DNA of 64,000 nt from Podarcis cretensis (lineage: Eukaryota), in NCBI GenBank assembly GCA_951804945.1, contig OX638149.1, positions 87,668,001 through 87,732,000 on the forward strand. Direction: 5' to 3'. Position 1 is the first letter of the stretch; each line of letters opens with the position of its first letter. The notes under the pieces were generated by a model. That model was not told the origin of the DNA. It ran no database searches and was given only the letters and a program-made list of their open reading frames with translations. Of the stretch, positions 45,918 through 57,300 are shown piece after piece. A program made the position numbers and the translations under genes.

Positions 45918-46115
45918 TCAGTCGTCGTCCTGTTGCAGCTGCTGGTGCCTGCTCTGATACCACAACATGGTGGGGAGGTTCTGGCAGCCTTGGTAGCGGC
46001 GCTGGCGCTCCTCTTCCCCCAGGGGTGGCACAGAGTGGCAGGGTGCCCCTGCTAATGAGACGTCAAGCAGCTGTGCTGGGGTGCCCGAGCCAAAGACTGC
46101 AGACCATGGACCCAC
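45918..46115 (-). CDS. Uncharacterised gene, last coding exon 7
   Basis: Acceptor tctcgttccttgcag; VGPWSAVFGSGTPAQLLDVSLAGAPCHSVPPLGEEERQRRYQGCQNLPTMLWYQSRHQQLQQDDD then TGA. Confidence 0.78.
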   Translation of the reverse strand: MGPWSAVFGSGTPAQLLDVSLAGAPCHSVPPLGEEERQRRYQGCQNLPTMLWYQSRHQQLQQDDD

Positions 46116-49100
46116 CTGCAAGGAACGAGAGAGATTGCTTCACTTAAGTTTGCCTTGGGCCACAACTCAATCTGTCATCAGCATTAATGTTTATATAGCA
46201 CTTCCAACGCATCAGTGTTTCAGGTACATTATCTCAGTATCTTAGACAATTGGCCTGTAAGGATGGCCAGTAAAGCAAACTGAATTAAGGCTGCCTGGCT
46301 GGCTTCCACATGCTCTAAAAAATGGTAAGTTTCAGTGACTTCCTTTAGTTTGTTGCATCCAACCCTGTGCCATCACTTGGAATTAACCGATTTAGCCTGG
46401 ATCCATTGCACTTGATTAAAAAATCAGTTCAAACTACCTTGAATGTACACTCCTTTTCCTTTTAATGGCAATGGTCTGTTTTTGAGCAGTAAAACTAATT
46501 GGGTGGGATGTAATAAAACACACGTTTTTCTTTCCATATGTGCCATATTGCACATCAGAAGACTCCTTTAGTGCAAGCTACCTTCCACAAACTTCAGGTG
46601 TCATTCTCTAATTGTCATCACAGATGGCCTGTGTGTCAGTTACCTGAGCAAAGGTTGGCTCTGGCCATTTGCCAAGTTCTTGTTTTCAGCATTGCTGCCT
46701 CTACACCTAAGCATTTATTTCTCAGTCTGTTTTGCTGCCCAATTGATTCCCAACACTTTCCCTACACACAGAGGAGAAACCAAACTGGTTGCAAGATGGT
46801 GCATAAGATGGCTTGGCCTTACAAGGAGCTGTGATCTGCCCTGAACTTGCTGCACAGCACAGGCCAGTTTTCATCTATGTTAATTGGCTAAACACCAATG
46901 TCCCTACTCCCCTCTCCCCTCCCCTGGAACTGGGAGTAAAGCCCAGGGAGTGCTGCCACCCAGTTAGTGATCCTGCCACTAGAAGCAGCCACTTTGAACT
47001 GGAGAGACACCTGTTGCTAATGCCACCTGCCAAAAGCAATTTGAGGATGGGCTTCCTAGTCACTATTTTGAGCCTCCTGGTATTTATGTCCAGAACAAAC
47101 AAATGCATCCTTGCCATCTCTTGAGGGACCATAAATTGGTGGCAGAGCATATGCATGCAGAAGGTAGCAGGTTCGAAACCCGATGTCCCCAGTTAAAAGG
47201 ACCTGACAGCAGGCAACATGAAACCTGAGAGCCACTGCCAGAGTAGACAACATTGGACAATTAGCCTGACTCCATATGTTCCTATGCTCTGCAAACACCA
47301 CGCCTTGGACTCCGAACAAGCACGGCCCACCTTCCTTCCACGGCACTTACCGGCAACAAATGCTGGAGGAGGCACTGGTCAGGCTGCAGTCCGGCCCAGA
47401 ACTCGGCAAAAGCCGACCCACCGCTGGCGGTAGTGGTGGCAGTGGCGGTGGTGGTGCTACGTATGAGCACCACGTTGGGATGGCGCCGTGATGCCCGCAG
47501 CTTCTTTGTCAGTGGCCCCGGATAGCTCTGGTCAAGGAAGAGGAGAACCCGGCGAGCGTTGCAGCTCTCCAAGTCTGCTAGCAGCTCCGAGATGGGGTAC
47601 CGCTCCTTAGGATCTGCCTGTTGCAGGGAAGGGACAGCTCATCAGCACCTGCCCCTTGGTCACAGACACACAAGCACACCCCTCCCCGCTCCACAGTTGG
47701 GAGATCAAGGGGATTCCACTGCCTGGGAGTTAAAAGGAGCGGATTAAATGGGGAAGAGCAAGACAGGGCGAGCACCCACTGCAAAGGCCGGTGTTGTTTT
47801 CTCCCTGCAGGCACACATGAAAGAGCTGGACGGCCCTTTGAAGGGAACAGAGGAGAGGAGAGGGCTGCAGCCTCCACCTGCAGTTCTGTCAGCATCTCTC
47901 CTTCCTCCAGTCGGGCTTTCCAGGACATGCTGGGACAGGTGGGATGACCTCCTCCTCCTCCTTCACCCCACTGCCAAAAGTGGCTCACTTCCCTTTCCAT
48001 TTCCAGCCTAGGAAACCCCAAAGGAAACTTGGCAAATGGCCAAATGCAGGCCTTTGAGAAGGGCTGGTGCCGCTTTGTATGTGTGCACAAGCATCTTAGG
48101 CAGCTGCTCTGCATTTTCCTGCCCCAGTTGGGTTCACTTGGCACCCCGACTTCACTGCTCCCGGCAAGCAATTGATATTGGCTTACCCCCATGTGATAAA
48201 TGCATTATATCGTTAGCATCCCCATTCCCTGCTTGGCTAGGCAGGTGACATTAGCATCAATAGCCAAGGTCTTTTTTTTGGATGATCATGATGAAGTAGG
48301 ATTCATTCATTTAACAAGATGCATATACTGCTTGACTGTTGTAAAACCTCCAAGCGGTTTTACTTGTAAGTTAACCTGCTGCTGCTGTTGCTTCATTCTG
48401 CACCAACCTGTAGCTTTTCCCAACAAGCAACATTCATCAGTGCTTGGCTGACCACTGGGCAGGTGGCCTGTGGCTGTGGCTATTGTCACGGAATCAAAAG
48501 TCTACCTTTTTAAAAGTGAGGAGCAGTGAAGAACACCATGACAGGTTTCCTATTGGATTTCTATGGGTCAGCATATGGCTGTCTCAATTCACCTGGAGAC
48601 AATTCCTGGGCAGAGCCACAGACTCCTGGACAAAATAATATATTTAATAGCATTGCTCATGGGGACTAATTTAGACCATTTCCTCAATGTATTTCTTCCT
48701 CTCTTTCTTCCTCTGCCTAACTTACCTGGTGGGTTACTCCCCCCCCCCAATAAATTGGCAAGAGATGTGCCCCAAGAGATGATATCTCTGCTGTGAAATA
48801 AGCAGCCCCACTTTGTAACTTGTGCGGTACTGTATTTATTGTGCCCCCACACGTTAATTCACCTATAGAGGTTGTGCACCAGAGGAGGGGTGGGAGGGAG
48901 AGAGGGAAGAGGCACATACCCTTTTCTCCTCCTACAGTGATGTCATACCTGGATCCATCATGCCACCCCACCATCCTCTGATAATGCGCACCCCATCCAC
49001 CCTTAAGCTCTGGAGGGTTTTGGCTACACATGCAAAATTCCAGTAGGATTGGGTTGATATCAATAGTGGGGACAGAGGATGGGATAGAACCTTCCTCCTA

Positions 49101-56700: not shown

Positions 56701-57300
56701 GGAACGGGAGGAAATAGGAAGCCTGGGGTGGGACGGGCGCAAGCCAATATGTTCTCTGCTGGGAGTGGTCGTCCACGGGGCGCGCGTGGCCTGAGGATGC
56801 GGCGTTCACTCACCCACGTAGAGGCTGTCGCGGCTCCGGCACCGGCGTGGGCTGACGTTGAAGTCGACATAGAAGAGCAGGAGCGGGTGGCCGAAGTTGG
56901 CGCCCGGGGTGGGGTCCAGCACGAGGATGGCGTCTTGCGCGGAGGGCGCGCCGGTGGGGCGCAGCGGGCTGCCGCTCTGGTTGCGGCCGGCCACGAAGGG
57001 CGGAGCGCCGGGTCTGTCTCCCCAGCCGTCGGGCAGCAGCGCCCGCACCTTGTGGCCCGGGCGGGCGGGCTCGGAGACATAGACGGCGGGCCCCGGCCCC
57101 TGGGAAAGGCGCGCCAGGCGCTGGCACTGCGGCCGCGGCAAGAGCCCGCCGCGCTCGGGACACTGCGCCGCCGCCACGTGCCGAAGCGCCGCCGCCGCCC
57201 AGCGCGCCACCCGCGCCTCGGAGAAGCGCTTCCCCGACGGGGCGGCCGCGCACGGCCAAGCGAGGGACGCAGCGGCCAGCGCCAACAGCAGCGGGGCCAT
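45918..57300 (-). CDS. Uncharacterised secreted protein, 544 aa, with a C-terminal degenerate legumain/caspase-like (clan CD, C13-like) domain; exons 57300-56814, 53235-53029, 52092-51922, 51249-51118, 49690-49518, 47617-47351, 46115-45918
   Basis: Seven exons with GT-AG sites, polypyrimidine tracts and consistent phases (1,1,1,1,0,0) give an open 1635-nt CDS from an ATG in a CpG island to TGA. Hydrophobic signal peptide MAPLLLALAAASLAWPCAAA. Motifs HAVLIAGGW..YPRH..FYQMLRRNGF..EHI, DSLVLYLNSP and RVLLFLDQSYPG parallel legumain motifs by eye. Confidence 0.85.
47125..47286 (+). mobile_element. Degenerate tRNA-derived SINE (Squam2-like)
   Basis: tggcagagcat..tgcatgcagaagg..caggttcgaaacc head and tgaaacc.tgagagccactgcca body, shared with 51392-51555. 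Confidence 0.55.
47351..47617 (-). CDS. Uncharacterised gene, exon 6
   Basis: Acceptor cccttccctgcaacag, donor |GTAAGT; ADPKERYPISELLADLESCNARRVLLFLDQSYPGPLTKKLRASRRHPNVVLIRSTTTATATTTASGGSAFAEFWAGLQPDQCLLQHLLP. Confidence 0.82.
49518..49690 (-). CDS. Uncharacterised gene, exon 5
   Basis: Acceptor tcttcttttctggacag, donor |GTAAGT; VTVEMGDVHPATEKLAIRSHLALVCRSLHCADSLVLYLNSPAASDGTMLLWDANRNGI. Confidence 0.82.
50685..50750. repeat. (CT)n(GT)n(GC)n compound microsatellite
   Basis: Direct reading; a second alternating purine-pyrimidine tract lies at about 50547-50588. Confidence 0.9.
51118..51249 (-). CDS. Uncharacterised gene, exon 4 (legumain-like RH motif)
   Basis: Acceptor ttctcccccag, donor G|GTACCA; GGWQEQVTYPRHAQNLLLFYQMLRRNGFRQEHIKAFFASEGQAS. 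Confidence 0.8.
51392..51555 (+). mobile_element. tRNA-derived SINE (Squam2-like)
   Basis: A-box TAGCTCAGTAGCAGAGC and B-box GGTTCAATCC, followed by a non-tRNA body ctgaaaccttggagagccattgccaatcagagt...ggaccaatgg. Confidence 0.65.
51922..52092 (-). CDS. Uncharacterised gene, exon 3
   Basis: Acceptor cttttctttcccag, donor G|GTAAGA; DLRGYSPCPEPLP...CELNKNTRRCHRQQLPLYKSCRMYQTCDHAVLIA. Confidence 0.82.
52740..52865 (-). mobile_element. Squam3/CORE-like SINE fragment
   Basis: Reverse copy related to 17893-18109 (aggttaggctgagagacagtgactggcccaaggtcacc..gagcttca). Confidence 0.6.
53029..53235 (-). CDS. Uncharacterised gene, exon 2 (Cys-containing, basic linker with RIRR)
   Basis: Acceptor ttctttgcctgcag, donor G|GTAAGT; GYECLIPAQRSRCENQLKRRPGRGKGRSQRSAGRIRREEPPVGLCEIHFLPMVVVAQDPKHLQRLNCV. 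Confidence 0.82.
53275..53800 (-). mobile_element. L2-clade LINE ORF2 3' fragment in intron 1 of the uncharacterised gene
   Basis: ORF 53226-53543 (-) contains LMLTFKALNNHGPEYLKEHL...[14 protein letters not shown]...FRRHLKAALY, the C-terminal L2 ORF2 signature. Confidence 0.75.

Follow-up and report, generated by a model that had tools for sequence, protein, structure and literature searches.

A seven-exon gene on the minus strand

The window analysed here is a 64,000-nt stretch of the Podarcis cretensis genome. Rebuilding the open reading frame from the window gives a 544-aa protein encoded by seven minus-strand exons (57300-45918; Table 1), identical to the model put forward in an earlier sequence-only reading. 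All six introns have GT at the 5' end and AG at the 3' end after a pyrimidine tract, the exon phases are compatible (0/1/1/1/1/0/0), and the joined coding sequence of 1632 coding nt contains no internal stop. Exon 2 is the top-scoring phase 1-1 exon candidate between exons 1 and 3. An alternative donor at 51136 would shorten exon 4 to 114 nt; the orthologues favour the 132-nt form. The start codon lies in a CpG island, as had been read from the sequence, and the 500-nt composition bin at 57000-57499 has a GC content of 0.78. Use of the first AATAAA after the stop, located by pattern scan, would possibly make a 3' untranslated region of ~0.5 kb. The peptides quoted in the sequence-only reading are all present (MAPLLLALAAASLAWPCAAA, HAVLIAG/GWQEQVTYPRH, DSLVLYLNSPA and RVLLFLDQSYPG).

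Table 1 Features of the gene in window coordinates
Feature	Position	Strand	Description
CpG-island promoter region	56800-57500	minus	Spans start codon; GC 0.76, CpG o/e 0.94
Exon 1	57300-56814	minus	aa 1-162 plus one base; first ATG of open frame; signal peptide, first part of N-terminal domain, sequons NQS and NVS; donor G/GTGAGT
Predicted signal peptide MAPLLLALAAASLAWPCAAA	57241-57300	minus	Residues 1-20; sole Kyte-Doolittle 19-mer >1.6
NQS sequon	56982-56974	minus	Residue 107, exon 1
NVS sequon	56859-56851	minus	Residue 148, exon 1
Exon 2	53235-53029	minus	aa 163-231; conserved Cys residues and basic disordered linker
RIRR, furin-type	53134-53123	minus	In exon 2 linker
Exon 3	52092-51922	minus	aa 232-288; CELNKNTRRC loop and clan-CD domain strand 1 (CDHAVLIAG); acceptor tttcccag/, donor /gtaaga
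Exon 4	51249-51118	minus	aa 289-332; GWQEQVTYPRH and helix 1
Exon 5	49690-49518	minus	aa 333-390; invariant Lys helix, catalytic-His-site strand, first half of DxNxNG loop
N371-S372-P373	49577-49569	minus	Exon 5; strand end at catalytic-His site
Exon 6	47617-47351	minus	aa 391-479; second half of loop (ADPKE), catalytic-Cys-site strand, H-x-N-V-V
S421 of D419-Q420-S421	47527-47525	minus	Exon 6; catalytic-Cys site
Exon 7	46115-45918	minus	aa 480-544 plus stop; conserved C-terminal GAPC...GCQNLPT..W motifs
TGA stop	45920-45918	minus	
AATAAA, first after stop	45384-45389	minus	Candidate polyadenylation signal

Orthologues and family distribution

In tblastn searches of the window, the Elgaria, turtle, shark and amphioxus orthologues match each of the seven exons, with the boundaries of the model, and no other region of the window is matched within the E-value cut-off. 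The Elgaria orthologue (P0001; 544 aa, 86% identical) aligns to exon 1 over its residues 1-167 (87% identity, E 2e-67), to exon 2 over residues 167-235 (87% identity) and to exon 3 with 93% identity. Annotated proteins from squamates, turtle, lungfish, shark, teleosts and amphioxus cover all seven exons with identical boundaries. Exon conservation in other reptiles, which had been set beforehand as a test of the model, is found for every exon: each is 76-90% identical in other squamates, and the turtle orthologue matches all seven. Because the orthologue matches fall on all seven exons at the model boundaries we reject a chance chain of open reading frames; judged from sequence, the locus is a real, intact lizard gene.

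The best 120 of the 162 homologues found all bear the name 'uncharacterized' or an equivalent placeholder, and the orthologues are annotated as "uncharacterized protein LOC..." or, in zebrafish, si:ch211-67e16.11. We found no paper on the family or on the zebrafish symbol, in line with the earlier remark that no named vertebrate gene is known to have this architecture. Invertebrate members come from amphioxus, octopus, snails, a mayfly and the nematodes Trichuris and Soboliphyme, and the Atlas holds arthropod clusters of the family; among the best 120 of 162 homologues there is no mammal, bird, crocodilian or amphibian. Full-length homologues of 517-535 aa sit on Logan contigs of just 1,960-3,358 nt, which leaves no room for introns and makes them cDNA-like; this suggests that the orthologues are transcribed. 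By sequence comparison, then, the locus is the orthologue of a conserved, uncharacterised bilaterian gene. Many public annotations already include a prediction of this gene, so the locus itself is no discovery.

A predicted secreted, cysteine-rich protein

The protein is predicted to enter the secretory pathway. Its first 20 residues form a hydrophobic segment that finishes in a cleavage-type A-A-A, a hydrophobicity scan of the 544 residues finds no further membrane-like stretch, and all full-length orthologues start with a comparable hydrophobic stretch. The protein has 19 cysteines, 18 of them beyond the signal peptide, and the family alignment shows 18 Cys columns that are conserved completely or at >=90%. 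The signal peptide, the many cysteines and the NQS sequon noted from the sequence are thus all present.

The N-terminal domain (~aa 30-235), disulfide-rich by its Cys content, has no fold match. It leads into a basic linker for which the AlphaFold2 model of P0001 gives a pLDDT below 50 (P0001 residues 181-210). An R-x-[KR]-R motif occurs in the linker of 23/41 homologues, compared with 14 sites in 20,306 other residues, and cleavage at the RIRR of the lizard linker may split the protein into two chains that stay joined by a disulfide.

A clan-CD fold in the C-terminal half

Clan CD includes the caspases, legumain, GPI transamidase, separase and the metacaspases. Profile searches give sub-threshold matches to this clan. 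Peptidase_C13 (PF01650) is the sole Pfam family matched by family members (13/41 at E <=0.1, best 3.2e-5); the highest bit score seen, 21.3 (P0034, E 2.1e-4), misses the gathering cut-off of 22.8 bits, and no domain reaches threshold in any member. The sequence-only reading had named this family among those to check. Pfam searches with P0001 and with the single exons of the window returned no match, and no family member matches Peptidase_C14. A family profile run against PDB sequences (HMMER) recovers plant legumain-type ligases at E ~0.7, in an alignment that spans exon 4 and includes the legumain segment 'NYRHQAD...Y..L...G...ENI'; all of the weak clan-CD matches in this search are legumain-type. 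The nearest named Atlas families are likewise all Peptidase_C13.

For structural comparison P0001 stood in for the joined lizard protein. Its AlphaFold2 model is of moderate confidence (pLDDT 70.7, pTM 0.73). The top Foldseek matches are exclusively clan CD, led by PIGK (7w72_K, E 2.3e-6) and followed by legumain and caspases, with probability 1.00. VIA-align superposes model residues 283-535 on legumain 26-288, metacaspase 4 and PIGK with Z 17-18, ~200 residues aligned and 3.0 Å rmsd. In an exhaustive search of 48,161 PDB representatives the best 32 all belong to clan CD, and no unrelated fold scores above Z 8.2. The stretch aligned to legumain and PIGK reaches residues 529-544, taking in the exon 7 motifs. 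Model strands 369-375 and 417-422 end directly ahead of N-S-P and D-Q-S, the strand-end placement that clan-CD proteins give to their catalytic His and Cys. The model thus supports a legumain/GPI8-type clan-CD (caspase-hemoglobinase) fold for the C-terminal domain (about aa 279-531, window numbering). This agrees with the earlier proposal of such a fold after a Cys-rich N-terminal half, and the three structural relatives named in advance, legumain, GPI8 and metacaspase, were all matched.

A substituted active site in a conserved pocket

The signature of an active clan-CD peptidase is absent: N371-S372-P373 and S421 replace the catalytic His and Cys. Across the family the catalytic-Cys column holds Ser in 180/184 homologues and Cys in none. 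At the His site, Asn occupies the first column in 139/146 homologues, from which the canonical His is absent, and Pro the third in 144/146; His is found in the Asn371 column of nematode members and one fish. The residue equivalent to the catalytic His would be either Asn371 or Pro373. With no homologue keeping Cys at the nucleophile position and with Asn-Ser-Pro at the His site, we infer that the family comprises no cysteine protease and that the Cys-His chemistry of clan CD would be impossible. Active clan-CD proteases conserve Cys and His strictly (PMC9604545), and pseudo-variants with Ser in place of Cys are already known in clan CD, the pseudo-orthocaspases among them (PMC6426788).

The surroundings of the substituted site are strongly conserved. 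The column at -2 to the nucleophile position (D419) is D or E in 182/184 homologues, and the first two residues of CDHAV do not vary among 41 sequences. D419, Q420, Y422, K346, H436 and N438, which would line the former active site, are near-invariant from nematodes to lizards, which argues that the pocket is still in use; D282 and W291 are invariant and would line it too. The window protein keeps every invariant family residue. The S1 pocket that accepts Asn in legumain is formed by Arg44-His45, which follow the first strand, Glu187 at -2 to the nucleophile, and Asp231. Window residues YPRH 297-300 align with the legumain N-Y-R-H in the E ~0.7 HMMER alignment, and the legumain R/H-equivalent column holds R in 16, H in 15 and Q in 7 of 41 sequences and is lost in invertebrates.

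Between the two 'catalytic' strands lies a D-x-N-x-N-G-x-A-x-x-x-E loop (D384-A-N-R-N-G-I-A-D-P-K-E395), whose D1, N3, N5, G6 and E12 columns are invariant or >=88% conserved. Calcium-binding loops of the EF-hand (DxDxDG) type have the 12-residue form D-x-[DNS]-x-[DNS]-G-x-[ILV]-x-x-x-E and are helix-flanked. Here position 8 is an invariant Ala, not I/L/V, and in the P0001 model a strand, not a helix, precedes the loop. By our reading of the PROSITE EF-hand pattern in its strict form, two positions of the loop do not fit; Pfam finds no EF-hand. The loop may make binding in the pocket calcium-dependent.

Relation to known clan-CD proteins

Legumain (MEROPS C13, PF01650) resembles the lizard protein in its alpha/beta/alpha clan-CD fold, which extends over the entire peptidase domain (against the P0001 model, Z 17.0-17.4 and rmsd ~3 Å over 195-211 aligned residues), in its motif order (first strand and 'Y-x-R-H', His-site strand, helix, nucleophile strand, acidic -2) and in its signal-peptide entry to the secretory/endolysosomal pathway. 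Sequence identity, however, is just 12-15%. The family of the lizard protein has Ser for legumain Cys189 and Asn-Ser-Pro for His148-Gly, adds a Cys-rich N-terminal domain of ~240 aa, inserts the DxNxNG loop between the active-site strands and lacks the C-terminal LSAM prodomain (PF20985, no Pfam match), its protein ending ~10 residues past the clan-CD domain. In legumain the triad is essential (PMC9604545). GPI8/PIGK (C13), the best Foldseek match, superposes with Z 15.5-17.2 as far as model residue 544 and is likewise lumenal with a signal peptide; in contrast to the family it retains both Cys and His; it is also anchored in the membrane by its C terminus, where the lizard protein has no second hydrophobic segment, and acts within the five-subunit GPI transamidase complex.

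The single highest score belongs to a metacaspase (C14B), Arabidopsis metacaspase 4 (Z 18.0). Metacaspases carry the motif D-x-C-H-S-G, which the D-Q-S-Y-S-G of the lizard protein resembles as a D-x-nucleophile-aromatic/His-S-G type, and metacaspases depend on calcium, a requirement that is plausible for the lizard protein. The metacaspase calcium site consists of scattered Asp residues, whereas the candidate loop of the family is contiguous (DxNxNG...E); the family also has Ser at the nucleophile position, and its protein is predicted to be extracellular or lumenal, unlike the cytosolic metacaspases. Clan-CD pseudo-enzymes share with the family a retained fold and a replaced dyad. Matches to the P0001 model include the c-FLIP protease-like domain (Z 12.6) and the Raptor N-terminal caspase-like domain (Z 11.1). 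Pseudo-orthocaspases have Tyr/Ser instead of His/Cys (PMC6426788), with Ser at the Cys position as in the present family. Those pseudo-enzymes are bacterial or cytosolic, whereas the present family is animal and C13-like, and its disulfide-rich proteins are predicted to be secreted; a site that was simply dead would be expected to show far less conservation than its substituted one does.

Possible functions

We think it probable that the gene is an intact orthologue encoding a secreted protein whose clan-CD module is non-proteolytic or non-canonical and retains a conserved pocket and a calcium-type loop. The signal peptide would direct into the secretory pathway a protein comprising, in order, the disulfide-rich N-terminal domain, the basic disordered linker and the clan-CD domain, and a furin-type cut at RIRR would leave two chains joined by a disulfide. 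Most likely the former active-site pocket would bind its ligand, a peptide or another molecule, and leave it uncut, by analogy with c-FLIP and Raptor, which are known pseudo-caspases, and the loop could place that binding under calcium control. We consider it hardly credible that the lizard copy is instead decaying or transcriptionally silent, or that the gene model arose by false chaining of ORFs: the near-universal family sequon N-V-T before GAPC does read D-V-S in the window, but the seven exons are open, canonical sequences stand at each of the twelve splice sites, 544 codons starting in a CpG island keep the frame, and both the identity to other squamates in each exon and the full set of invariant residues speak against decay.

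Binding alone explains the invariance of Ser at the nucleophile position no better than retained catalysis would. An active enzyme, unlikely in our estimate, would use Ser421 on the clan-CD scaffold as the nucleophile of a hydrolase, transpeptidase or esterase, with Lys346, His436 or the nematode His at the Asn column as candidate base, and the loop may add calcium regulation. Dead active sites usually drift, and here Ser persists across bilaterians together with its near-invariant D/E-Q-S-Y neighbours; an acidic residue persists at -2, matching E187 of legumain and the Asp of the metacaspase D-x-C motif; Lys346 and His436 show little or no variation; and nematode members and one fish could form a His/Ser pair. 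On the other side, the canonical His is missing from nearly all homologues, and we know of no enzyme with the caspase-hemoglobinase fold that works by a serine mechanism. The known Cys-to-Ser variants of clan CD are also held to be pseudo-enzymes (PMC6426788). The most far-reaching form of this proposal, a first serine-nucleophile clan-CD enzyme acting as a secreted, calcium-gated hydrolase or transpeptidase through Ser421 and a non-canonical base, maintained from nematodes through to reptiles but missed so far since mammals appear to lack the family, strikes us as distinctly unlikely. Slightly more doubtful still is an origin within clan CD and outside the C13 lineage, as a separate family or a metacaspase-like (C14B) derivative whose legumain-like motifs would be general clan-CD features. 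The metacaspase 4 score, the shared motif, the sub-threshold C13 match and the calcium dependence of metacaspases, one of which was solved with calcium (7qp1), lean that way; yet Z gaps below 1 are ties by the aligner's own rule, and the Pfam, Atlas and PDB sequence matches all lead to C13 or legumain.

Significance

In what would be an animal-wide secreted group, the family joins a legumain-type fold to a nucleophile position at which Ser is invariant; an N-terminal domain peculiar to the family and, between the active-site strands, a calcium-type loop are further features. The absence of mammals, birds, crocodilians and amphibians among the best 120 of 162 homologues may account for its neglect. 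If its members are pseudo-proteases, they would be an extracellular, C13-like addition to the clan-CD pseudo-enzymes; if they are active, they would bring a new type of catalysis to a fold that has been studied intensively. For genome annotation, a domain assignment becomes possible for hundreds of 'uncharacterized LOC' entries.

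A conserved seven-exon gene

Border reading and the enumeration of in-phase splice-site pairs reproduce exactly the model proposed in the sequence-only reading, in which seven exons splice in phase to encode 544 amino acids (see table). Each of the six introns has GT...AG ends and a pyrimidine tract, the phases are consistent, and the exons sum to 1632 coding bases (544 codons) with no internal stop. The start codon, the first ATG of the frame, lies as had been claimed inside a CpG island (GC 0.76, CpG o/e 0.94); an AATAAA follows the stop by about 0.5 kb. The signal peptide and numerous cysteines of the earlier description are also present, with residues 1-20 forming the sole hydrophobic 19-residue window and 19 Cys in total, one of them within the signal segment. 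The protein has two N-x-S/T sequons, the one already reported (N107) and a second at N148. A sequon N-V-T preceding GAPC that is nearly universal in the family reads D-V-S in the window lizard (46064-46056, minus strand), where this glycosylation site is predicted to be lost.

Gene model, key sites and neighbouring coding exons in the window
Feature	Position	Strand	Basis or description
Exon E1	57300-56814	minus	border reading
Exon E2	53235-53029	minus	enumeration of in-phase AG...GT pairs between exons 1 and 3
Exon E3	52092-51922	minus	border reading
Exon E4	51249-51118	minus	border reading
Exon E5	49690-49518	minus	border reading
Exon E6	47617-47351	minus	border reading
Exon E7	46115-45918	minus	border reading
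RIRR	53134-53123	minus	furin-type motif in basic linker
N371-S372-P373	49577-49569	minus	His-strand end
S421	47527-47525	minus	Cys position
ATG9 exon, long and open	3387-4133	plus	Pfam E 2.2e-88, profile positions 127-375
ABCB6-type exon, MTABC_N	18180-18725	plus	Pfam E 3.6e-63
ABCB6-type exon, ABC_membrane	29617-30207	plus	Pfam E 2.6e-7

Two variants of the model were considered. A Cys-rich open stretch at 55608-55234 was rejected as an alternative exon 2, as no orthologue matches there. An in-phase exon-4 donor at 51136 (minus strand, A/GTGAGG) would give an exon of 114 nt, shorter by 18 nt or 6 amino acids; orthologues favour the 132-nt exon, alongside which the shorter form could also be used.

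A search with exon 6 alone against 1.84 billion representatives returned 55 relatives, the first of which (P0001, 'uncharacterized protein LOC134393305' of the lizard Elgaria) is likewise 544 amino acids long. With P0001 as query, 162 proteins were returned. The best 120 of these come from squamates, turtles, a lungfish, bowfin, gar, many teleosts, and sharks and rays, and include none from a mammal, bird, crocodilian or amphibian; this distribution is suggestive, not proof, of loss of the family in those groups. More distant members occur in amphioxus, octopus, two snails, a mayfly and the nematodes Trichuris and Soboliphyme, and arthropod clusters of the family are also found in the ESM Atlas, where a search with exon 1 gave scores of at most 0.76 and no lead. 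The UniRef name 'GPI inositol-deacylase' attached to the Soboliphyme member was disregarded, as the Pfam scan gives it no support.

When squamate, turtle, lungfish, shark and teleost proteins were aligned to the window with tblastn, all seven exons were recovered at the modelled boundaries, with summed identities of 76-90% for squamates, 65-68% for turtles and about 50% for fishes. The amphioxus protein also matches all seven. The squamate and turtle matches bear out exon conservation in other reptiles, a test that the sequence-only reading had set. Several fish members are encoded at full length (517-535 amino acids) on Logan contigs of just 1,960-3,358 nt, which are too short to contain introns and must derive from transcripts; relatives therefore express the spliced form as RNA. 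These comparisons indicate that the locus is a real, conserved gene, and it is very unlikely to be a pseudogene or an artefact.

P0006, an annotation from another squamate, fuses a ZFAND2-type N-terminus (zf-AN1, UIM) to exons 2, 6 and 7 of the gene. Its matches in the window lie at 53233-53006, 47629-47459 and 46115-45945, with a further match antisense to exon 4 (51122-51217, plus strand), and its zinc-finger part has no match within the 64-kb window. This public gene model is chimeric and probably reflects a read-through mis-annotation.

A predicted clan-CD fold in the C-terminal half

Family members have no Pfam domains on record, and Pfam scans of single window exons, which are too short to be informative, gave noise alone (CCDC174_GRSR, Lipase_chap). 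Among full-length members, Peptidase_C13, a profile that the sequence-only reading had named as a check, is the sole family to appear (13 of 41 at E up to 0.1, best 3.2e-5). The matches listed, which map to the catalytic-Cys region of the profile, all fall under the curated cut-off (21.3 vs 22.8 bits). A profile built from the 41-sequence family alignment (A1) matched PDB sequences weakly (E about 0.7), with seven of nine matches being legumain-type enzymes that align over the domain's first strand and helix. Its top match, a 31-residue TNFRSF18 stretch over the N-terminal domain motif (E 0.008), is too short to interpret. A phmmer search of PDB sequences with a snail homologue gave short-chain dehydrogenase matches alone, which were set aside as spurious.

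The fold was modelled using AlphaFold2 with A1 on the orthologue P0001 as a stand-in for the window's joined protein. The model (pLDDT 70.7, pTM 0.73) has good confidence at residues 281-510 and contains three low-confidence linkers (97-122, 181-210 and 250-277). In a Foldseek comparison with the PDB the top matches are clan CD alone: PIGK ranks first (E 2.3e-6), legumain, caspases, MALT1 and metacaspase come next, and every one of these has probability 1.00. VIA-align superposes residues 283-535 on the complete legumain peptidase domain (26-288), metacaspase 4 and PIGK at Z 17-18, with about 200 residues aligned and an rmsd of about 3.0 Å. A Foldseek-independent search of 48,161 representatives placed only clan-CD structures among the best 32, including the pseudo-caspases c-FLIP and Raptor, and unrelated Rossmann-like folds begin at Z 8.2. 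The nearest named Atlas clusters, whether by language-model features or by structure, are all PF01650 (Peptidase_C13). The modelled C-terminal half is therefore assigned to the clan-CD fold, closest to C13, in agreement with the proposal that a legumain/caspase-fold domain follows the N-terminal half.

The active site is altered

Active clan-CD enzymes strictly conserve Cys and His (PMC9604545), and legumain catalysis uses Cys189-His148-Asn42 (PMC9604545). In the P0001 model, Asn-Ser-Pro lies at the end of strand 369-375 and Asp-Gln-Ser comes after strand 417-422, an arrangement that, as modelled, has the topology of the clan-CD His and Cys strands. (Model numbering is +4 relative to the window numbering used for all residues not ascribed to a model.)

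Among the fetched homologues the Cys column holds Ser in 180 of 184 and Cys in none, the other four being R, V, N and T. The Asn371 column is N in 139 of 146 homologues and the Pro373 column is P in 144 of 146. The legumain His148 equivalent is either Asn371 or Pro373, and as the His is missing either way the studied protein is not a cysteine protease. His is found at Asn371 in just four nematode entries (P0045, P0050, P0175 and P0041) and one fish (Coregonus P0096), which read H-G-P or H-A-P, not N-S-P, next to the invariant Ser; these members would have a potential His/Ser pair. Residues around Ser421 are also retained, with D/E at position -2 in 182/184, Q420 in 177/184 and Y422 in 169/184. 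C281, D282, W291, K346 and N438 are invariant in A1, and H436 is present in 40/41. In these alignments, conservation around the former active site is unusually high for a dead one.

A calcium-type loop, a basic linker and the N-terminal domain

The segment D384-A-N-R-N-G-I-A-D-P-K-E395, which is split by intron 5, sits between the two active-site strands. In the family the columns for D, G, A and E do not vary and those for the two N hold N or D, a pattern of the DxDxDG calcium-loop type that makes calcium binding plausible. The loop departs from a canonical EF-hand by its Ala at position 8 and by its place after a strand, where an EF-hand has a helix; the family scan gave no EF-hand Pfam match.

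A basic, low-confidence linker between two conserved Cys contains a furin-type R-x-[KR]-R motif in 23 of 41 members, whereas elsewhere in members there are 14 such sites in 20,306 residues. This suggests that the protein may undergo convertase processing at the linker.

The most conserved motif of the N-terminal domain is DAVLVLDPsPg.sFGHP..LF..D. For a model of the domain built from Trichuris fragment P0176 (pLDDT 70), Foldseek gave a best E of 0.24, and a VIA-wide search found no PDB representative reaching Z 5, the best (4.5) falling on the clan-CD stub outside the N-terminal domain. Cystatin-fold chains align to P0176 residues 33-195 at noise level (Z 3.1-3.4), making a cystatin fold a lead at most.

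Genomic surroundings

An exon assigned by its Pfam match to an ATG9-type autophagy gene and an ABCB6-type mitochondrial ABC transporter gene stand upstream in the window, on the plus strand. From coordinates and strand, the transporter gene would end tail-to-tail with it. On human 2q35 the order is ATG9A-ABCB6-ZFAND2B, and we know of no gene there at the position of the studied gene. Near the expected end of the transporter gene, an ORF at 43548-44027 (plus strand) ends in a Glu/Gly/Thr-rich repeat and has no Pfam match.

Two features lie within introns. Beside the exon-2 acceptor in intron 1, a 109-codon open stretch (53229-53555, minus strand; …FKALNNHGPEYLKEHL…RAFSVVAPALWNDV…) resembles part of an interspersed repeat of a type common in vertebrate genomes. 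Intron 4 contains adjoining (CA)n and (GA)n microsatellites (about 50600-50760), which give rise to His/Thr- and Arg/Glu-repeat ORFs in several frames.

Novelty and proposed function

The gene itself is not new, because many genome annotations already include a prediction at this locus. The earlier remark that no named vertebrate gene was known is upheld among the best 120 of the 162 homologues, which are called only 'uncharacterized', 'hypothetical', 'unnamed' or by the zebrafish clone symbol si:ch211-67e16.11. That symbol occurs in no paper among 8.4 million full texts, and a literature search found no papers describing such a family. The nature of the family, which is without a Pfam domain, descriptive name or paper, seems unrecorded.

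We class the family as C13-like clan CD that has Ser in place of Cys, an N-terminal domain of its own and a calcium-type loop as an insertion. On model structure alone, metacaspases and C13 are in a statistical tie, and placing the family outside C13, in a lineage of its own or one related to metacaspases, seems to us quite unlikely. The main rival on function is a genuine Ser-nucleophile enzyme, which would account for the invariance of Ser421 but lacks the His and any known precedent; we regard it as an improbable reading. For the preferred reading, given below, c-FLIP and Raptor offer precedents as clan-CD proteins without catalysis, and pseudo-orthocaspases carry Ser at the Cys site (PMC6426788), as the studied family does.

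With a signal peptide, 18 conserved Cys and no further hydrophobic segment, the protein belongs to the secretory pathway, as a secreted or lumenal protein. There, in the reading that we prefer and consider reasonably likely, its clan-CD module would carry out no proteolysis, the conserved former active-site pocket would still bind a ligand, and calcium may control that binding.
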